A DNA stretch of 45,941 nucleotides from Polymyxa betae A26-41 (Eukaryota > Protista > Endomyxa: Phytomyxea): positions 1 through 45,941 of the forward strand of contig RBZT01000476.1 in the NCBI GenBank assembly GCA_003693705.1, read 5' to 3'. How positions within the stretch are numbered: position 1 is the stretch's first letter; the number at the start of each line of letters is the position of its first letter. Of this stretch, positions 16,816-32,761 are shown one piece after another. The position numbers and the translations under genes are program-made. A model generated the notes under the pieces. The model saw only the letters and a list, made by a program, of their open reading frames with translations. It did not search any database and had not been told where the DNA came from.

Positions 16816-19085
16816 TTAAGTACTCTGGATAACGTTAACTGCAGATTGAGCAGGACATTGTCCAGTAGGTCCAGGACAGTAATGTTGCCGAAATTGATAA
16901 TGATCAATATGATGTCCATATATATGAGAGAAATACTTTACATCATTATCACAATGATGTTCAAGACAGTACAATATAGGATTTACAGAATCTCGGAGAT
17001 ATTCACTCAGATCATCTGACAATGTCAAATCCCGCATCTTCAAGTAATCATTCAGTCGCTGAATACAGTCCAGTATGAGCATCTGTGATATATTCAGAAA
17101 TACAAACAAACTTGAACACAGTAATACCGTCCCAAATTCTTTCATAGAATATCTCAATCGACAATGATAACGGAGTGAACAATCAAAACCTAGTTGGGAT
17201 TTGATAGAGTATTTCCCCTCATCATTGACAATGAGAGTCGTAAATCCGCACAGTTTACTCTTGCCATTGTGCCTCGAACAAAGCTTCATAAAATGGCTAT
17301 GGGAAATCGGATTTCCATATCGAGATTGAAAAGTCCGAAGATCACAATTGCAGCACATTGTAACACATGCAAGCACAGGATAACATACTCGCTGCAGCCA
17401 ATGCTCACAGCCTGCACGTGACATGTTCACCTTCGGGTCGGTAATCTTGGCACGAACTAATTTTTGAAATAAACTGGCAATCAATATCACCTTCTGTAAC
17501 GTGGTCTTCGATGTCGCAATTTCCGATATTTCGGTCAATATGAGCTCGTAATCGAGAACTTTGATAATAACGGGATCGCTTGCAGCTGGTCTGGATATCG
17601 ATGGTCGGACAGATATGTTCGTATTAGTAAGAAACGCGTACTCGTCATCATCAGGCTGCTTTTTCTGCATGATTCAATTTGAGATTCCGCATATAATCAG
17701 AATAAAACTCACCAGAAAGGCACAGAGAGTATAGTAGTCTATGATCTTATCGACATTAAAATTAAGCAAATTCCCAAATTCAGGAAAACCCCAAAACTTT
17801 GGCATAGCGAGGTCCTTTGGTGGCGATCTAACTTTCATCCGTTTTCTGGACGGTTTTTTGCCTTTTTGTAGAGGAGGATGGTCAATGAGAGAGCTATCTT
17901 GGACCTGATTAATAGATTTGTCGGCAGTGGAACGTTTGGATGGGCATTTATCTCCGGAACATCGATCATGAAGTTCCCAATTACGGAATGAATTCCCCCA
18001 GGTTGTCTGAAACTTCCGGAGATCTTTCTGACAGCAATGCATAACACATCGCAATACAGGACGACACATTCCATACATACCATGTTGAATTCTCCTGTCA
18101 ACCTCGCTCCAAGACCATTTAAACATCCGGGAGGCCCAGATCCATTTCCGATACAATTTCGCAATTAAAATCAGTTTCTGTAATGTGCTGCGAGCATAAC
18201 CGATTCGTTCGATTTCACTCACATCCAGATCGTATTCTTTCACATTGATAACTAATTGTGAGTTGCTCATGAAGCTTTGGTCTTCATCGCCATCGGACAA
18301 AAAATTAAGTTCCTCATCATTGGGCTCTTTGGCCTAATCAACAGTCAATACACAGGCGGGCAACACGGCTTGTCAGAATTCACCAGAAACTTGCAGAGAC
18401 TGTTATAATCATTGATATCAGTCACATCGTGATTGAAGGACGACAGAGGGTCGGTTGGAGATAATGTCTCCTCAGTACGAGGACGTTTCCGGGAGATAAT
18501 TTCAGCTGGTTTATCATTCTGATAATGAAATCTCAGAGTTTCCTAAACCATGAGACTAGATACGGAAACATTACATTGATAGTTTCCTGAATAGGAGGTA
18601 AAGCTGGAACATTATCTGTATCGTGTAATAAAGATGTTGATGTTGTTGGCGATTCAGCATCAGGTAGAGTGTTGAATGTTTCCCGAACGCAATTTTCAGT
18701 GAATATCTGAACGATTCATCAATTACATAACACAACAGTCATATAATCATTTTGTACACCAAAATATACATCCAGGTCAATTATGGGATCTAAGAGGTTG
18801 TTGAAATAGGAAAGATCCGAGAGATCTTGGATTGGATATGAATGATAGAGAATCGGATCCTAGAAAGACATGTTAATGAGCTGTGACTTCATTCTGACAG
18901 AGAAATCTTACTCTGGTCTCTGTAACATGGAGGTCGAGATCAGAAGCTGTAACGTGCAGGTCGAGAGGAGAGACAGTAACAGGAGTCTCTTCCAGAGAGT
19001 CTGTAACATGATTGATCCCAGGAATGCATGTAGCCAAGCCCTCAGAAAGGATGAGAATCAGGAAGACAATCGCTGGGTCAACCAT
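16816..19085 (-). CDS. Paralog A: predicted secreted, NLS-bearing protein with three tandem Cys/His-rich domains
   Basis: Exons 19085-18912, 18859-18770, 18706-18575, 18518-18384, 18333-17713, 17664-17128 and 17082-16816; all introns are phase-0 GT-AG and the frame is open. Signal peptide MVDPAIVFLILILSEGLA; RKRPR at 18477-18491; KKPSRKRMK. Domains have the pattern PVLxCxxxCxxDxxxF...G...H...C. Confidence 0.8.
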
Positions 19086-19713
19086 CTCCAGGCAAATGAA
19101 GTCGTACTGTCGTAGTCGGAATTCAGCGCGGCGAAAGTTTAGCGTGGTAAACGCGAAACGCAATTCAGCTCGCAGTTTCTTATTTCAGTGTTTTTTTGTC
19201 TACAGTCGCGAACATCTGGTCTGTGACTAATATGGGAGTTCGCAGATTCGTTAAGCCTCCACCGAGAACACTTTGAGGGAAAATTATGGGACATAATGTC
19301 ATTCAGAAGATCTCATCGAAAAAATAAGCAACATGGCCCGAACTTTTCAAACATTTCCAATGCTGACAGAACCTTAGCGAACAGGCAGTTTCGGCATTTC
19401 AAGATCGAGTTTTTTTTTGCGTTTTTGTGGCGAAGGAAAACAGACGCATTGTAATGTTACAAGCTGGTGCTTCATCAAGGAGATCATCAGGACCTGGTCG
19501 CACCACGATGCACAATTCATGGGACGATTCAGCTTCAATTCTTCCCTCGGTCCGCTCTACATTCGGAGACTCTACGACAACTGCCAAGCGATTATGCCTG
19601 AAAACGACCAAATCCGTGAGCCGATCCGGTCAGAGCGAGATAATCCACAGACCCTTCAGAAAGTGCACGGATGCTGAAATAACATCAAACTAGCGAAAAG
19701 GCTGTTTATTATT

Positions 19714-21826
19714 TTAAGGAAGATACTTGAAAGTATTCTGTTCCGTCATCTTTGAAAGCAGTTGCGCAGGACATTGTCCAGTAGGTCCAGGACAGCAATT
19801 CTGCTGAAATTGATAATGATCTATATGATGTCCAAATATATGAGAGAAATAATTGACATCATTATTACAATGATGTTCAAGACAGTATAATATTGGATTT
19901 ACAGAATTTTGAAGGTATTCACTCAGATCATGCGAATATTTCAAATTCCGCTTGTTCAGGAGTGTATTCAGTCGCTGAATACACTCCAACATCTTCATCT
20001 GTGATATATTTAGAAAATACAAAATAAATTTGAACAGAGTAATACCGTGTTAAATCCTTTCAAAGAAAATTTCAATAGACAATAAGCACGGAGTTCCCTA
20101 TCAAAAACCAGCTGCGATTCGAGGGAATAATTCTTCTTATTGCTGACAAAGAGAGTCTCAAATCCGCACTGTTGACTCTTGCCATTGTATCTAGAGCAAA
20201 GCGCCCCAAAACGACTATGTGAAAACGGATTTCCCCATCGAGCTTGAAAAGTCCGAAGATCATTCTGACAGCATATTGTAACACATGTCAGTACAGAGTA
20301 ACATGTTCGCTGTAGCCAATCACTACCGCCTTGACGATGCATTCCCAATTTTGGGTCGGAATTCTTGGCCCGAACTATTTTCAGGCAAAAACTGGCAACC
20401 AATATCAGCTTCTGTAACGTGGTCTTCGAAGACGAAATTTCCGATGATTCGGTCAACATGAGCGGATCATCGAGAACTTTGATAATAATGGGGTCTTGTG
20501 CAGCATGAATTCTGCCGTTTGATCGGATCGGAATGTTCGTATCAGTAAGAAACGCGTACTCGTCATCATCAGCATGCTTTTTCTGAATGAAGGTGAGATT
20601 CCGCATTGAATATGAATAAAGCTCACCATAAAGGAACAGAGAGTAGTGTAGTCTGTGATTTTTCGATACCAAACTCAAACAACTTCACAAAATCAGTCGA
20701 AACCCGAAACTTTAGCGGAGCGAGTTCCTTTGGTGATGAGCCAAATTTCATCCGTTTTCCCGACGGATTTTTGTCATTCTGTAGAGAGGGATGCCCAATA
20801 GAGATAAGAGGGCTATCTTGGACCTGATTCATAGACTGATCGGCAGTTAACAGTTTCGATGGGCATTTATCTCCGGAACAACTCAAATCAATTTTCCAAT
20901 GACGGAAGGGATTCCCCCAAAGATTCTGAAATCTCCGGAAATCTTTCTGACAACAATGCATAACACATCTCAATACAGGACGACACACCTTATACATGCA
21001 GTTCCGTATCGTCAAATCGAGCTTCCTCGAAGACCATTCAGGGGTCCGGGAGGCGCAGGTCAACTTCCGATACAGATTTGCAATCAGAATCAGTTTCTGT
21101 AATGTGCTGCGAGCATATTGGATTCGTTTGACCTCACTCACATCCAGATCATATCCTTTCACATTGATAACTAATTGTGAGTTGCTCATGGAGCATTGAC
21201 CTGTATCATCATCGGACTTTGAAGACAGAAAATGAAGTTCCTCATCATTCGGTTCTTTGATCTAATTTACAATCAATATACAGCCGGGCAGAACGAGTCT
21301 CAAAATTCACCAGAAACTCGCAGAGACTGTTATAGTCATTGATATCAGTCACATCATGATTGAAAGAATTCAGCGGGTCGGTTGGTGATGATTCTTCGCC
21401 AGTACGAGGACGTTTCCGGGAGAGATTCTGAACTCGCCCATCATTCTGATTATGAAAATCTCAGAGATTTCTAAACCATGAGACTAGATACGGAAACATT
21501 ACATTCATAGTCTCCTGAATAGGAGGTAAAGCTGGAACATTATCTGTATGGCGTAATACAGATGTTGATATTGATAACGTTTCGATATCAGGTAATTTGG
21601 ATGTGTCTTCTTGCTGATCGAGCAGTCTTACTGCTGTGTCTGTGAGGTTGGGAGAATACACGCTCACATTAAGATCGGGAGGATAGACGCTGACATTAAG
21701 ATCGAAAGGAAAGACACGATCAGGGGTCTCTTCCAGAGAAGCTGTATCGGTACTAGGCGTAAGACTGAATGCCGCGAAGCACTCAGATAGGCTCAGTATC
21801 AGGAGGACAGTCGCGGAGCCAATCAT
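19714..21826 (-). CDS. Paralog B of the same family; one apparent 1-nt frameshift near 20660 (pseudogene or sequencing error)
   Basis: Exons 21826-21503, 21445-21311, 21261-~20627, 20582-20046 and 19998-19714. Signal peptide MIGSATVLLILSLSECFA; RKRPR at 21404-21418; three Cys domains clearly homologous to those of A. An A-run appears one base short relative to the frame of A. Confidence 0.72.
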
Positions 21827-21961: not shown

Positions 21962-22425
21962 TGTTAGCAGTTAGAGTTGAAAAGCGTGACAATCCCTGGG
22001 TTAGTTTTGGATTGGATAATTCGTGTTTGTTGATGTCAGTCAACAGGCGGCTCTGTATCCTTAGCTCAAGGCCGCAACACTCAGGCTCAGTCATCGTCGC
22101 TACCAAGACTCTTACTCCCAATTTCAGAGCCGTTATCATTTCACCCATTGACAACAGTAAAGCACTCGCTCAGCCCTATCGCGATCGGTTGGACCTTGGA
22201 GAAGTTCGATGAGAGAGAGTAGACCCCTTAACCCATTTCCTACTCCCTTACAAGTTTCCCAGCTTACAATCTATATCGTTATATGTAACAGCTATTTTCG
22301 TAAGCGCACGAGAGGAACTCGCCCATGAATTTGCTGTGAGAATAAAGTGCGTTGTTAAAGTTGCTGAGATTTAGCTTTTTGTCTCGGTAATTTTTGAGCT
22401 GTATTTTGAACTTTCACATTTAACA
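21962..22425 (+). mobile_element. Probable solo LTR
   Basis: TGTTA...TAACA termini; AATAAA at 22341 followed by a U5-like T-rich tract. Flanks gttg/attg give only an imperfect TSD. Confidence 0.45.
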
Positions 22426-24069: not shown

Positions 24070-26280
24070 ATGGGCCCAGGCGACAACCAAGAGATGACGA
24101 CAGTCCAAGCAGCTCCAGCAAAGTTCACCAACAGCAAGTTGACTGAGGACAACTGGCTGATGTGGTCGTGGGAGTTCCTACTCGCGGCTGATAACTATGG
24201 TGTCATGGGGATCATTGAGGGATCAGAGAAGGCGCCTGACAGCGCTGAATTGAAGAACGAGTTTATTCGAAGGGCGAAGTTGGCAATGACCCAATTGTCA
24301 AGTGCATCGACGACTCCATGAAAATCAAGATCGCTGGAAAACGTTCCGCTCATGAGGCCTGGAAAGTACTGAAATCCTATCATGAAGGCAAATCGAGAAG
24401 CGACATTCAACGTCGCAGGGTTAGGGTGGAGAATTTACGATATAAGGATTTCTCCAAGATGACAGAATTCTTGGACACAATCAAGAGCAAAGCTTTACAA
24501 CTAGAAAGCATGGGTGCCGGATTGGACAAAGAAGACATAATTGTTATCGTCCTGGAGAAGCTACCGTATTTTCGCAAGCACGCAGCAGCAGCCATTCGTA
24601 ATGAACGTGGAAGCAACAAAAGAAGCCTGGAGGAGGTCCTCAAGTATTTGATGGATGAGGCAGATATTGAAGAGGCTTACCGCAAGCGACGCAATGGAGG
24701 ACGCAACAAGCGAGGTGACAAGGACGGCACTGAGCAAAATGAGGCGGCATTTTCTGTACGAGGACAAACGAACAAGAAAAATGGCCAGAATTCGAAACCA
24801 GGAGGGAAGTCAAAGGACGTTGTGTGCCATCGATGTGACAAGTCTGGACACATTGCACGCAATTGTCGTGAAATCCTGCGGGACGACACACCATCGACGT
24901 CAATTGCTCTACACGCAACATTTCTGGCCAAGACATCCCAAGAGAACCGATTACGAACATGGTGGATTGACTCAGGATGCACGGCGCACATGACCAACGA
25001 TGAATCGATTCTGAGTAATCTGCGTGAACCTAACACTGACGCTGTAATTATAGGCGATGGAACAAAAATGCAAGTGAGTGCAATGGGAGACTACAGTGAA
25101 GGGGGGCTCACCCTACGAAACACCTTACATGTCCCTGCCCTGAAGGACAACCTAATGTCCGTCAGCAGCGCTCTGGACAACGGCGTGGACAAAGTGGTTT
25201 TCCAGAAGAAGAGCGTTGAAATCATCAAGGAAGGGAAGGTGATCGCCACTGGCAAGAGAGACGGACTCCTGTTCTACTTGAGCATTAACGGCAAGCCGCA
25301 GCAAGGCGAACATGCAGCAGTAAACCTGCATAGACAAGCCCCAGTTAAGGCAACGTACGAGCTCTGGCACCGAAGATTGGGCCACCTACACTATGACGCT
25401 ATCAAGAAACTGCACCAAGAAGGCAGAATAATCGCTACGGGTTCAGTGCCGCAACAGCCATGCTCGACCTGCGTGATCAGCAAGCTCCCGCGAAAACCAT
25501 TCAGTCAAGGACGATCATTCGATCCAAAGCTGTGGGCGAGGTAATCCATTCTGACGTTTGTGGACCCTTCAATACCGTGGGCAACTATAACGCAAGGTAC
25601 TTCGCTACGTTCATCGATGATAAGAGTCGTTACATAGCAATCTACCCTATCGCGAAGAAGTCGGAAGTGTGCGACAAGTTCAAGGAACTCGCAACCGCAA
25701 TGGAAGCAGAATTTGGATGCAAGGTAATCCGTCAGCTGATATCCGACAACGGTGGAGAGTATGCAAGTGCGGCATTCCGTACGTACTGCAAGACCAATGG
25801 CATCAAGCAGATGACGACCATTCCGCATACGCCACAGCAAAATGGGATTGCGGAGCGAGCCAATCGGACGATCGTGGAAGGCACCCGAGCTCTGATGCAA
25901 GAAACGAAAATGCCACCCAGTTCCTGGTCAAGCTGTCGTGTACGCGGCGTACATTAGAAAACCGTTCACCGTCAAGAGTGCTTGATCACAAAACACCATG
26001 TCAGGTTCAACAATCCACCAGACCTGAGCAAGATCAAATTATTCGGAGCCAAGGTATACTACCACATACCTCAGGCAACACGCACAAAATTGGACAGCAC
26101 GGCCGACGCAGGATGCTTCGTTGGTTTCGCGTCATCCCAGCAAGGATTCCTCATACGGACCAAGTACGGCAAATTAAAAGCATCGAGAGACGTCGTGTTC
26201 ATGGAATGTCCCAGTGAAAACGAAACCCTGAACGAGGAAACTGAAGATGAGCTTCCTTTTCCTGTTCAGAGCAATTGCAG
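24070..26280 (+). pseudogene. copia gag-protease-integrase, frameshifted
   Basis: Zinc knuckle CHRCDKSGHIARNC; protease WWIDSGCTAHM; WHRRLGH...CSTC; integrase HSDVCGP, SDNGGEY, PQQNGIAER. Frameshifts near 24318, 25515 and 25930-26000. Confidence 0.93.
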
Positions 26281-26324
26281 GTGACGTTGTTTGCAGTGTA
26301 TGGTTACAAGTATTTCTGTTGCAG

Positions 26325-28039
26325 AATGTGACGGCTTCGCTCTCCACCATCTTGATACATGACTGATCATCTTCGAATACAGTAGTTGGCGAGTTTTCGG
26401 CTAATCCTAGGTCACTTAACAGCTGACGTAGCCATTTTACCTGTTGCACCGCGTGTGCTGCTGCTACATATTCGGCTTCTGTAGAACTAAGCGCCACGCA
26501 CTTTTGGTGGCGCGACCCCCAGAGAATTGCGCCTCCATAGACGATGAGGTACCCAGTCGTCGACTTGCGATTAGATGAGTTAGCCCAGTCGGCGTCCACA
26601 TAGGTGACCAGCTTGGACTTGGCAGGTGGTGGCGCGGCCTCCTGTGGCGCGGCCCTCGCATACTTGATGCCGTAATTCTTCGTTCCTTTCAAATATCGAA
26701 GCACTCTCTTCACGGCCGTGACGTCTTCGTCGGTGGGCGACTCCACTGCTCGAGCACACCGGGTGACGGCCGCTGCGATATCCGGACGAGCCGCGCATGC
26801 CGCAAACATCAGAGCGCCTACACATTCTCGATAGGGAAACTTGGTCGTTGACGCCACCGGTTCGGTCTTGACTGTCATGTTTTCAACACACATTGGCGTA
26901 GGGGCGGGTTTGCAGTCTTGCATCTTAAATCTTTCTAACATCGCTTCAATATAGGCTGAGAGCGATATCGTGTTGATGCCCGCTTGTAAGTTCTGATTGA
27001 CCTTCACGCCAAGCGAATGTGTGAGTAAGCCCATATCTTTCATCTTGTACTCTTGACTTAATAATTTCTTAACTATTCGTAGTTCGGCGTCGCTTGTGGC
27101 TGTCATTACTAAATCGTCGACGTATAGGGCCAGAATGACGAAATGCTGTCCAACACACCTTATGAACAGACACTGATCGGCGTTGCATTTCTTAAACCCG
27201 AGTTTACGTAGGAACGTTGAAACGGTAAGCCACCACGCACGACCTGCTTGCTTAAGACCATAAAGAGGGCGAACGTTTCCTCATAGTCAACACCCTGAAC
27301 CTGAGAGAAGCCCTTTGCGCACTGTCATATTCTCTCATTCCATTCGTTACCAAGTACTTCCTTTATTTCACTTTCCTTTTACATTTTCTTAGGAAGATTC
27401 TAAGATCGATATCTACCTTTCTTTCCTGTGCCGTTCGATGGTATCTGCGTACTTTTCGATCCTTATCTTCCATTCGTTCAATAAATTGGTTGAGTTCTGT
27501 TGACCCGACTATCGCCACCTTTTGAGTAGATCTATCTCGGTCTATCGGCTCTGGCAGCACACGCACAGACGTGCCTTGAAGCCTTTGAAATTTCCATCTT
27601 CGTCGGTCTTGATTTTGTATGCCCATTTACATCCAATAATGTTTACGCCTTCAGGTTTCTCGACAAGCCTCCAGGTGCCTTTCTGCATATGGCTCGCATA
27701 TTCATCATCCATTGCGGCGATCCAATCATCTGCATTTGGTAGTGTTATTGCCTCACGCCTTGAGCGCGGAGTGATCGTGCTTGAGGATACCATCAAAGCC
27801 TTGGCAGAATGTTGACAAGTCTTGCTGCTGGTCATGCGGTAATCAGACGGGGTGTATCTCCGAGTCTGCGTCCTTATTCTTGATCCTCGTCGTGGTCCAT
27901 CACTGTTCTCACTTTCTTGTTCATTATCATCCATACCATCCATGAGCTCTTGGTCCGTCTGGGAATCGTCGTCTACGTTATCTTCTCGGTCGGTATCTTC
28001 TTCACTTTTGTCCTGTTTCTGGGTCTGATGTTGCTGCAG
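26325..28039 (-). pseudogene. copia linker-RT-RNaseH segment, inverted relative to the LTRs and gag
   Basis: On the minus strand: WIAAMDDE, GCKWAYKIK, KARLC-AKGFSQVQGVDYEETFA, LYGLKQAGRAW, LYVDDL, YRECVGALM, YVDADWA, VALSSTEAEY. Confidence 0.93.
27323..27561. mobile_element. Nested solo LTR (239 bp) inside the copia RT
   Basis: TG...CA termini, perfect 5-bp TSD CGCAC (27318-27322 and 27562-27566), AATAAA at 27480. Removing it restores ARLCAKGFSQ. Confidence 0.9.
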
Positions 28040-28718: not shown

Positions 28719-29827
28719 TGACTTTCAGGACAGAATGATTACTGCTCTTACGCAGCTAACAAAAGGGCCGCATGGGCCAGGAAATGTCTTAGATAAAAGA
28801 CTTGCTGCAGCCCATCACTGCCAGCCTCAGGGTACCTCCGCCTAGTATAATTTCTGATGTTGCCATTTGGTTTTTTTATCTTGAATGATGGAGAGCTCGG
28901 ATAGTGCGTATATCCAAGCGTTAATCCAACGAAAATATCATGATCAATTCAGTCGTGCTTAATTGGGTTTTGAATAAACATACTGACGACTGACGAGTGA
29001 CGCCAAGCGACGAATCCCTCTTTAATTTGAAGGTCTTTTGAGCCTCACCGGCTCAATTTTATCGCCCAATTCACAGAGCCAATAATTGCTATGATGTTGG
29101 ATGCAAAAAATATATCAGACCTGATTGGTAATGTTGGAGACACCGGCCCAGTGGCTTCAGACACAGGTTTGGCTACTACATCCGTCAACAGTGAAATACG
29201 GTAAAGACCGACTCGCTACACGACGTATACTTGCCTTGGGTGGATACAGCAGCTTTTTTTCACATTGGAATACATCATATTCAATTGTCCCCATTCGCTA
29301 GCTTGGTTTCTGTTAGTAGATCCTTTCGTGTTGAAATATAAAATGATAGATCGCAGACAGGTGGGCATTTCCGATATCACCAGGAGCGCAATGCATTCTG
29401 TCTGTCTGAGGCAAATTCGCACACTGAAGCAGGCGCTCTTTGTCAGCCCTATTCTTGTTGTATCCGCATACTTTGCCATCACATTGCAGATGGAATTTCA
29501 TGTGATAAAAAAGAGATCCGCAGCGTGCTCCAAGTCAGGAGAAAATGACACATTTCATCACTGGAAAACATACATTATTCGACAATCTGTTAATGGTGTT
29601 ATGAGTTCATAGCACGCGGTCAATCCAGTTCTCACTGAATACAGACATACACACAGAATCAGATTCTGTTTGCGGAATGTTTCTATGTAGAACAAACGTT
29701 GCTTGATTTCGATCCTGTCAGCAAAATTGGCTTTGGTTTGATGGATCAATCTCACAATTGTTGACACAGAAAAAATTGGAGTTTCAGGCACTTGAAGAAC
29801 TGAGTCAATTCTACAATCCTTTACTGA

Positions 29828-31883
29828 TTATGTACTCTGGTTAGCGTTTACTGGAGATTGAGCAGGACATTGTCCAGTAGGACAGGACAATTATTCTGTA
29901 GAACATGATAATGATCTATTTGATGTCCAAATATATGAGAGAAATAATTGACATCATTATTACAATGATGTTCAAGACAGTACAATATTGGATTTACAGA
30001 ATCTCGGAGATATTCACTCAGATCATGTGAAATTCAAATTCAGCTTTTTCAGGTAATCATTCAGTCGCTGATTACACTCCAATATGAGCTTCTGTGATAT
30101 ATTCAGAAAATACAATTAAAACTTGAACACAGTAATACCGTCCCAAATCCTTTCATAGAATATCTCAATCGACAAAAAGCAGAATCATCTCTATTAAAAC
30201 CTTATTTATTGTCACTGACAATGAGAGTCTCATATCCGCACTTTGTATCCTTGCCATTGTGTCTAGAACAAAGCGTCACAAAATGACTATGGGAAAACGG
30301 ATTTCCCCATCGAGATTGAAAAGTCCGAAGATCATTCTGACAGCACATTGTAACACAGGAAAACACTGGATAACATGTTCGCTGTAACCAATGATCACAG
30401 CGTTCACGTGTCAGGTTCAATTTCGAGTCGGTAACCTTGGCACGAACAAATTTTAGAAATAAACTGGCCACCAATATCAACTTGTCCAAAGTGGTCTTGG
30501 AAGTCAAAAGTTCCGATGTTTCGTTCAATATGAGCTGATTATCAAGAAACTTTAATAATAATGGGGTCTGTTGCAGCTGGTCTGGTTATCAGTGGTCGGC
30601 TCAAAATGTTCGTATCAGTAAGAAACGCGTACTCTTCATCATCAGGATGCTTTTTCTGAATGACAGATTGAAGGAAAGATTCCGCATTCAAAATGCATAA
30701 AACTCACCAGAAAGGCACAGAGTGTAGTGTAGTCTGTGATCTTCTCGACACCAAAATCAAACAACCAAATTCAGGCAAAACCCTACACTTTGGCAGAGCG
30801 GGATCCCTTGGTGAACCATATTTCAACCGTTTCCGGACGGATTTTCGTCATTTTGTAGAGAAGGATGGCCAAAATAGATGAAAGAGTAATTTCGAACCTG
30901 ATTCATAGCGAAATCGGCAGTTAACAGTTTGGGTGGGCATTTATCCCCGGAACATCTTTCAAAAAGTCCCCAATGACGGAATGGATTCCCCCAGATTTTC
31001 TGAAACCTGCGGAGATCTTTCTGACAGCAATGCATAACACATCGTAATACAGGACGACACATTCCATACATACCATGTCGAAATCTAGCATCAACCTTCA
31101 ACCAAGACCATTCAAGATTCCGGGAGGCCCAGATCAATTTCCGATACAGATTCGCAATCAGAATCAGTTTCTGTAATGTGCTGCGAGCATAACGGATTTG
31201 TTTTATTTCACTCACATTCAGATCATATCCGTTCACAGTGATAACTAATTGAGAGTTGATCTTGGAGCATTGATCTGCATCGTCATCGGACTTTAAAGAC
31301 AAAAACAGAAGCTCCTCATCATTCGGCTCTTTGATCTAATCAGCTGTTAATATACTGGCGGGCAGCACGGCTTGTCAGAATTCACCAGGCAGAGACTGTT
31401 AAAGTCATTGATATCCGTCACATAGTGACTGAGGGAATACAGAGGGTCGTTAGGAGATAATGTCTGGTAAGTACGACGATAACTTCAGCTGTTTCATCAT
31501 TTCTGATTATGAAAATCTCAGAGATTTCTAAACCATGAGACTAGATACGGAAACATTGCATTGATAGTCTCCTGAATAGGAGCTAAAGCTGGAACATTAT
31601 CTGTATCGTGTAATAAAGATGTTGATGTTGAGGGCGTTTCAAAATCAGGTAAAGTCGATGCGATTTCTTGCCGCCAGAGAAATCTTACTGCTGTGTCTGT
31701 GAGAATGGGAGGATCCACACTCACATTAAGATCAGGAGGATAGACGCTGACATTAAGATCGAAAGGATAGACACGATCAGGAGCCGCTTCCACAGAATCT
31801 GTAACATTACAAGGCCCAAGATTGAATGCCACGAAGAACTCAGATAGGCTCAGAATCAAGAAGACAATCGCGGAGCCAACCAT
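29828..31883 (-). pseudogene. Paralog C of the secreted Cys-domain family, probably pseudogenised
   Basis: Signal peptide MVGSAIVFLILSLSEFFVA and three Cys domains homologous to A and B. The donor after IQETIN is changed to GC, the RKRP codons are deleted (~31470-31490), and there are premature stops and frameshifts (e.g. at 30202 and 30823). Confidence 0.78.
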
Positions 31884-32761
31884 TTCCAAGCGGAAGAGAT
31901 TCTGATCGTCGGACTTCAGGGATGAGACATTTTTTGTGGAGGAATCAAAATTCTGCGCCCAGTTTTGGCAAATTTATATTTTCGTGGTTTGAAGATTGTG
32001 TTGAGAATTGGCAGATATTAAGGATGAAGAGGAAATGATTCTGGACCCCACCCTGCATAGGTGGTGGCGCTATAACTGCAGACTCGGACAGCAATGGACG
32101 TCATAATCGCGGAGCAGGACCGACTGTCGAAATCCTGGACCGGCTGCCGAGCTGGTCGATGATAGACCGGCCCCAAGTGAGGCTGGCCCGACCCCAATGG
32201 GGGCGCTGCCTGCCGAAACAACGTTTCAGGATGTACGAGCCGAACGGAAGCGGCCTCCCTGTGCATCTCTCTCGAAATGGCTTCAGTCGCTTCTTCCTTT
32301 CAATCAATTTACATCGCCGCTGATCTGCTTAGCTATTCGCTGTGTGTTTATTAAACTGTACTGAGCTGTATCTTTCTTTATTGGGTTTGAGATCCGCACC
32401 CACAAATCTGATCAACTTCGAGGTATTTATTCTCATTTTATCGATTTCGATGCATTCTATAGGGTTGCAAACCCTAACTTAAAATACGTCGGTTTGTTTT
32501 TCGCGATAAATTTTTATCATATTCTTTGTGCACGAAGTCGCCATTTTCATCAGTTGGTAGTTCAATCGGCTTTCCACATTTTTGAAATGTCCTGTAAATT
32601 ATCTCGTCAACATATGCGTTGGCTAACTTCGGGACTAGGAATTCCGTTATTCTGTGATTTCGATGGTGTTTCGTCGTTTCATTTGAATGACTGGAAATTG
32701 CCGGTCAGTTAGCCAAAATATACTATTTTGATTAGGTGCTCAGGGATATATTTTCAATCAT

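Follow-up and report, generated by a model that had tools for sequence, protein, structure and literature searches.

Genes A, B and C

The window analysed here is the whole of a 45,941 nt stretch of Polymyxa betae A26-41 DNA (contig RBZT01000476.1, positions 1 to 45,941) that starts at the first base of its contig, and the genome in which its genes were searched for comprises 27,085,814 bases in 1,001 contigs. P. betae is a plasmodiophorid, an obligate parasite inside beet root cells, and it is an unculturable parasite of a crop, with effectors that are almost unknown. The minus strand of the window carries gene A (16816–19085), gene B (19714–21826) and a remnant, C (29851–31889), which are three copies of one gene type and encode three related Cys/His units of approximately 105 amino acids (aa) apiece. 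A and B form a tandem duplication with a period of approximately 2.92 kb and 76–89 % DNA identity; C lies 10 kb away from this pair, and a copia-like element sits between B and C.

Gene A is the sole intact three-unit gene within the window. Its model, which was checked exon by exon, has seven exons encoding 655 aa; all seven are multiples of three in length (phase 0), and the six introns are 45–56 nt long with GT..AG boundaries. Exons 1 to 4 (18912–19085, 18758–18859, 18575–18706 and 18384–18518, the last possibly reaching 18542, as its acceptor is ambiguous) have splice sites deduced from sequence only, and are followed by exon 5 (17713–18333), exon 6 (17128–17664) and exon 7 (16816–17082). 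Assembled contigs from two public runs, whose kind is not on record, match A with zero mismatches in the flanks and skip 17083–17127, a 45 nt stretch with GT..AG on the minus strand, and a further contig stops precisely at 17713, the exon 5 boundary. We interpret the contigs lacking this intron as spliced transcripts of A.

The product of A begins with a signal-peptide-like N-terminus (19026–19085, MVDPAIVFLILILSEGLATC), a hydrophobic feature that recurs across the copies described below. A nuclear-import-like motif, SRKRPR, is encoded in exon 4 (18477–18494), followed by unit 1 (17935–18258, CC type and basic, profile expect value (E) 1.7e-44), a second nuclear-import-like motif, KKPSRKRMKVR, in the linker after unit 1 (17827–17859), unit 2 (17242–17574, CC type and basic, E 7.4e-44) and unit 3 (16846–17082, His type and acidic, E 3.1e-20). 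Each repeat module of A closes, directly before an intron, with the motif D-Y-x-[ST]-L-C-x-F-L (18384–18410 in exon 4, 17713–17739 in exon 5 and in degenerate form in exon 6), which is also found in an orthologue from Spongospora and in metagenomic fragments.

Gene B has its units at 20854–21177, 20172–20492 and 19765–19995 and does not have exon 2. Near 20660 it has lost 1 nt, seen at the junction as a drop in repeat spacing from 2914 to 2913; the deletion leaves the unit 1 exon at 635 nt and interrupts the frame between units 1 and 2, so that B spliced in the manner of A would be out of frame. C, a truncated copy that is also frameshifted, consists of a leader (31518–31889), unit 1 (30931–31251), unit 2 (30247–30561) and a frameshifted remnant of unit 3 (29851–30033). 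A prior interpretation made from the letters of the window (the sequence-only reading) had taken A, B and C to be paralogues, which holds in so far as matching units are present in all three, but only A has remained intact. Downstream of C, at 29316–29534 on the minus strand, there is a weak, non-significant unit-like stretch (profile E 0.15; RCGSLFYHMKFHLQCDGKVCGYN) that may be a relic fourth domain.

The Cys/His unit

The relationship among the three units is evident in pairwise comparisons, with BLASTP E-values of 4e-19 for unit 1 against unit 2 and, when unit 3 is compared, of 3e-6 with unit 1 and 6e-7 with unit 2. A profile built from 96 units recovers nine units in the window (E 1e-48 to 2e-18), and so the three units that the sequence-only reading had described in each paralogue were correctly recognized and placed. 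The leader EIxxI...TLQK, which that reading had noted in front of the first two units, is also real, although it is better regarded as part of the domain, since in the structural model EIxxI...TLQKLILIAxL forms a beta-hairpin and the first long helix. The AlphaFold2 model of unit 1 of A has a predicted local distance difference test score (pLDDT) of 81.7.

All nine window units contain the core motif P-[IV]-[LM]-x-C-x3-[HC]-x7-F-x4-W-G ... C ... C. In an alignment of 127 domain sequences the first ligand-candidate column is Cys in 126 rows, and the position four residues further on is occupied by His (80 rows) or Cys (47 rows) in 127 of 127; further along, two columns have Cys in 93 and 95 rows, and the F and W of the motif are present in 122 and 92 rows, respectively. 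That His and Cys replace one another at this position is consistent with a metal ligand but not with a disulfide partner, and the pattern of conservation suggests that the unit binds zinc. Units 1 and 2, which contain 6 and 8 Cys residues, respectively, are strongly basic (isoelectric point (pI) 9.3–9.6, net charge +8 to +9). The median pI is 9.6 among copies of unit 1 and 5.8 among those of unit 3, which is acidic.

The domain is previously undescribed and uncatalogued. Pfam scans of all window exons, of 10 external hits and of the 127 domain sequences gave zero matches, profile searches of PDB sequences gave weak coiled-coil or bZIP noise only, and a search of PDB folds with a domain model of pLDDT 89.9 gave zero matches; among these three collections there was thus no known extracellular disulfide-bonded domain, a match that would have spoken against the sequence-only reading. 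Nor does the domain match a curated model or solved structure of the known zinc-finger families (Pfam zf-*, THAP, BED and others), and feature searches of the ESM Atlas returned nothing. A word-index protein search with the open reading frame (ORF) of units 2 and 3 also returned nothing, within the length limits that apply to it and with the P. betae draft apparently having no deposited proteins. A row for a transcription activator-like (TAL) effector in the Foldseek output was discarded as noise (E 7.3). An exhaustive profile search of 1.84 billion representative proteins found 107 clusters at E ≤ 0.001. With these 107 representative clusters, a model of pLDDT 90 and no PDB neighbour, the unit yields a definable new domain family.

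A Crypton-type tyrosine recombinase and its tail

A gene for a Crypton-like tyrosine recombinase (YR) occupies 1–1548 on the minus strand of the window. Its exon 1 (89–1548) lies within a 487 aa ORF (85–1548) in which the motifs H-x-x-R ... A-R-H ... Y are seen; the apparent stop at 85–87 falls within the GT splice donor of a 56 nt intron (33–88), after which exon 2, beginning at 32, continues past the end of the contig, with the domain-encoding tail lying beyond position 1. There are about ten copies of this gene in the genome, with 90–96 % protein identity, and no reverse transcriptase adjoins the YR in the one copy inspected for it (locus L055). The gene at 1–1548 is thus of Crypton type, a YR without reverse transcriptase and in multiple near-identical copies.

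The sequence-only reading had pointed to a similar motif C-terminal to the catalytic domain in Crypton-like YR proteins of protists, and this resemblance is borne out. The YR of two other element copies, on contigs C375 and C39, is followed by two more exons on the same strand, which connect to it in frame through GT..AG introns; the domain is encoded by the second of them (unit profile E 2e-12 and 2.5e-7). The YR gene therefore does end in the domain, as can be read in these two copies, the window YR gene itself being spliced and continuing off its contig. Complete tails are located at 4022–4423 on the minus strand of L055 and at 3895–4182 on the plus strand of L056, both in other copies of the element, and the full YR protein is about 750 aa long and encoded by three exons (window 1–88; L055 3950–5120). 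The linker W-R-P-I-F-V is conserved in Plasmodiophora brassicae and metagenomic homologues too. When the P. betae units were aligned with an alignment of YR tails using hhalign, the probability was 99.4 % (E 3.9e-21, 91 columns), and at least 12 of the 107 clusters are homologous to the window YR, with phmmer E from 1e-62 to 5e-5, and carry the unit at their extreme C-terminus. These YR-plus-tail homologues include proteins of P. brassicae named 'Tyr recombinase domain-containing protein' (among them SPQ94712.1), and others come from metagenomes. The YR tails resemble units 1 and 2 in their basic character (pI 9.2). Judged by these alignments, the unit and the YR tail are truly homologous.

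Genes A, B and C, as well as every family locus inspected, encode a leader plus three units and no YR core; they are recombinase-less derivatives, not transposase genes. The sequence-only reading had gone further and derived them from the C-terminal domain of the YR. Of this proposal the homology and the lack of a YR core stand, while the direction of descent, from YR tail to recombinase-less gene, is favoured but not proven. It is favoured because the YR tails are scattered throughout the domain tree, which is weakly resolved and unrooted. In this tree many environmental sequences of the CC type fall together with P. betae units 1 and 2, unit 3 forms a clade of its own, and three-unit proteins from metagenomes lie apart from the P. 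betae units, among the YR tails. Derivation from transposase tails may have happened more than once.

Size, architecture and evolution of the family

The unit 1 exon has 152 matches in the genome, with in-frame stops in 25 of the best 60, and the unit profile identifies 478 candidate places, with all 150 listed ones at E below 1e-34. We estimate a family of roughly 100–150 genes and pseudogenes. The 42 loci inspected all run from leader through KRPR exon to units 1, 2 and 3 in that sequence, with an extra unit 2 at one of them (L018), and this order holds even in subfamilies that are 33–40 % identical to A; the triplication therefore predates the expansion. Each member has a signal-like N-terminus, a variable short-repeat region, the KRPR motif and three tandem units, with KRMK after unit 1. 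The signal peptide and nuclear localisation signal named by the sequence-only reading correspond to recurrent features: the N-terminal pattern M-x-G-x-A-I-x-F-L-I-L-S-L-S-E-C-x-A-A-F recurs from copy to copy, and 24 of 28 copies have SRKRPR and 16 of 22 a KRMK-like cluster, with drift in the adjacent linker. Most copies also have an N-x-T sequon after the leader. Exon 2 and its flanking introns (18650–18950 in the window) align in only about 11 of the 27 dispersed copies; the exon is missing from the majority of copies, B and C among them.

Among dispersed copies the shared DNA is confined to a segment from approximately 100 bp before the ATG through approximately 90 bp after the stop, and its upstream part contains a motif like AAACTGCGCGCAGAAT. 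We note that similarity between copies ends on the 5′ side at a conserved, partly palindromic motif like AAACTGCGCGCAGAATTG, some 60–80 bp upstream of the ATG; this motif is located at about 19150–19170 in the window for A and is found in family copies at L003, L007, L008, L015, L017, L024 and L027. This upstream motif is a candidate core-promoter element. The median number of synonymous substitutions per site (dS) in intact copies is 0.21–0.37 and the median ratio of non-synonymous to synonymous substitution (dN/dS) is 0.53–0.69, by which measure the family evolves fast.

The three-unit architecture is conserved in a second plasmodiophorid genus. Proteins of this layout are present in Spongospora subterranea; one orthologue of 639 aa (A0A0H5REK9) combines three units with a classical signal sequence, a region rich in Ser and the motif 'DYDSLCVFL'. 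This protein is included in a supplementary sheet listing secretome proteins by pLDDT (PMC12503489, secretomes built with SignalP), with a pLDDT of 55.9, which is below the pLDDT >65 column of the summary table in that study. The same study describes orphan helical proteins as the largest secretome cluster of P. betae, and no tie between these and the tail-domain family was established. An ENA metagenome contig from a eukaryote (L061) contains two tandem, intron-less three-unit genes at 471–4062 (P0019 and P0024, flanking a 238 aa ORF), both encoding signal sequences and KRPR. Their neighbours on this contig are ordinary eukaryotic genes, for a hybrid histidine kinase, SNAPC3 and an ABC transporter.

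Comparison with Crypton tails and with effectors

The closest parallel among known systems is GCR1_C (PF12550), the C-terminal DNA-binding domain of the CryptonF recombinases of fungi and oomycetes, and the yeast proteins Gcr1, Msn1, Hot1 and Cbf2/Ndc10 derive from Cryptons with this domain (PMC3212892). In both cases a domain C-terminal to a Crypton YR also survives in recombinase-less host genes; the P. betae domain differs in having a putative Cys/His ligand set and in having been triplicated, joined to a leader and amplified about a hundredfold. The best fold neighbour of the unit model in the ESM Atlas is a fungal cluster in which 47 % of members have GCR1_C, with template modelling (TM) scores of 0.57/0.50 and a root mean square deviation of 3.4 over 86 aligned residues. 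This apparent kinship between predicted folds is a lead, not a result. The Pfam GCR1_C model matches none of the 127 domain sequences, and its 28 places in the genome (23-bit cut-off) include none in the tail-domain family or in the tail of the window YR. Of these 28 canonical places (C377:1540–1776, C426:3784–3969, C508:1991–2155 and 25 more), 23 are over the Pfam cut-off and some are in open frames of 480–535 aa; alongside the window YR the genome therefore contains another lineage, CryptonF-like, or else genes that derive from such a lineage.

A Crypton lineage with a conserved tail other than GCR1_C has a precedent in the CryptonS elements of oomycetes and diatoms, which have an unnamed conserved C-terminal region instead (PMC3212892); the likeness is by description only, and no named oomycete protein was present among the domain clusters whose names were looked up. 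The animal DUF3504 genes (KCTD1, ZMYM2-4 and QRICH1) are likewise host genes made from parts of Crypton proteins, although there the recombinase-derived core has been kept and in the P. betae family only the tail domain. Within the literature collection searched, no paper tied Cryptons to plasmodiophorids. With the Crinklers of oomycetes and the TAL effectors of bacteria the family shares a modular layout, with a putative N-terminal export signal, nuclear-import-like motifs and repeated C-terminal modules, as well as large size, fast evolution and a pathogen that dwells in plant cells. There is, however, no sequence or fold relationship to either group, delivery and DNA binding are predicted activities in the case of the P. 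betae proteins, and no LFLAK-type motif of the Crinklers was seen by eye in the family.

Possible roles of the three-unit proteins

We propose, with about an even chance of being right, that the family proteins are candidate effectors that are secreted and bind DNA in the host nucleus, with zinc modules derived from the YR tail. Each unit would be a mostly helical module built around one zinc ion, whose ligands would be the Cys of the core motif, the residue four positions after it (His or Cys), where the long helix ends, and a pair of Cys in the C-terminal loop. In the transposase the module may bind nucleic acid and help to target the enzyme, by analogy with GCR1_C in Cryptons from fungi, and the basic units 1 and 2 would have retained this binding; that the units bind DNA is suggested by their basic charge and by the same analogy. 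The tail would have been copied out of the element, triplicated by duplication of an exon-plus-intron module, joined to a secretion leader and then amplified. The parasite lies naked in the host cytoplasm, and export of the proteins would accordingly take them into the host cell; import into the host nucleus would follow, and there they would act as effectors by binding to DNA or chromatin. Both secretion and nuclear import are predictions from the leader and the basic motifs.

A bolder form of this proposal, which we put forward only tentatively and would expect to be wrong in at least some part, is that secreted proteins with three DNA-binding modules of an undescribed zinc-binding fold reach the host nucleus, where host genes would be reprogrammed or silenced in the manner of TAL effectors, and that the architecture possibly arose twice. 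Two origins are suggested by the position of the metagenomic three-unit proteins in the domain tree, away from the P. betae units. If true, this would amount to a protist counterpart of TAL effectors built from the tail of a Crypton transposase. Compared with the yeast proteins Gcr1, Msn1 and Hot1, the new elements are an uncatalogued domain with a probable zinc site, its triplication and combination with a secretion leader and nuclear-import motifs, and the presence of about a hundred copies in an unculturable crop parasite. The family in any case yields a testable nuclear-effector candidate for the plasmodiophorids, and an active-looking transposase and its recombinase-less derivatives in one genome provide a system in which to ask what Crypton tails recognise.

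Several observations weigh against host-nucleus effectors. Secretion, import into nuclei and the binding of zinc and DNA are predicted properties, and since the kind of the public runs is not on record, the reading of the skipped intron as splicing is an interpretation only. A Cys-rich domain that passes through the secretory pathway could be disulfide-bonded, the 6 and 8 Cys residues of units 1 and 2 being compatible with this; unit 3 is acidic, and the Spongospora orthologue has no obvious KRPR motif. Stops in about 40 % of the 60 best copies, the broken state of B and C and the high dN/dS may indicate a family in decay, and the limits of the shared DNA (about −100 to +90) would fit a mobile cassette as well. 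The poor resolution of the domain tree, and its lack of a root, leave the direction of descent not established. Lastly, infection by P. betae has been described as symptomless (PMC6328671), and a large effector arsenal is not obviously expected in such a parasite.

Three other explanations have to be weighed with these points in mind. The proteins could be extracellular and disulfide-bonded, with roles for example in the spore wall, on the zoospore surface or in adhesion, the domain then being a borrowed scaffold and the basic motifs incidental. The signal-like leader with its N-x-T sequon in most copies, the variable short-repeat region that follows it and the even Cys counts of units 1 and 2 are what such proteins would be expected to have. 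We nevertheless consider this unlikely, as the alternation of His and Cys at one position in all 127 sequences fits a metal ligand, the enzyme that shares the domain works in the nucleus, the first two units have a strongly basic character, the KRPR and KRMK motifs persist amid drifting linkers, and no known extracellular domain matched in Pfam or PDB. The leader is, conversely, an obstacle to placing the proteins in the parasite's own nucleus, as domesticated DNA-binding proteins (transcription factors or repressors of Cryptons) whose N-terminus is not a working signal peptide. Such a role has precedent in the yeast transcription factors Gcr1, Msn1 and Hot1, which come from a Crypton GCR1_C tail (PMC3212892), would account for the nuclear-import-like motifs and basic units, and could explain a large, fast-evolving family as the mirror of an arms race with a multicopy element. 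It appears quite improbable, however, given that the leader is conserved across paralogues and genera, that the Spongospora orthologue is in the secretome sheet of a SignalP-based study and that independent metagenomic three-unit proteins have classical signal sequences.

The remaining explanation concerns the DNA and not only the protein: the 2.4 kb unit may be a mobile or mobilised cassette, for instance a non-autonomous Crypton derivative or a Crypton accessory gene, whose product binds Crypton DNA sites, for example as a regulator or competitor of the recombinase. Transposition would then account for the number of copies. The sharp limits of the shared DNA (about −100 to +90) without homologous flanks, within which the introns still align, are consistent with this, as are the uniform, star-like divergence of the copies (dS about 0.35, dN/dS about 0.55), the many dead copies and the domain held in common with the transposase. 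Yet no terminal repeats or target duplications were seen, the shared DNA is bounded, as a gene would be, by a conserved motif resembling a promoter and by a 3′ end resembling a poly(A) signal, and there are tandem arrays with spacers as well as an orthologue of equal architecture in another genus; moreover, a secretion leader would make no sense in a transposition factor. We therefore regard the cassette as a rather poor prospect and retain secreted, DNA-binding effectors as the preferred reading.

Other features of the window

Remains of gypsy-like and copia-like retrotransposons are located at 7464–9015 and 24318–27943. Just past B, at 21998–22046 on the plus strand, an assembled contig skips 47 nt with GT..AG on that strand, from which it follows that a neighbouring plus-strand gene is spliced.

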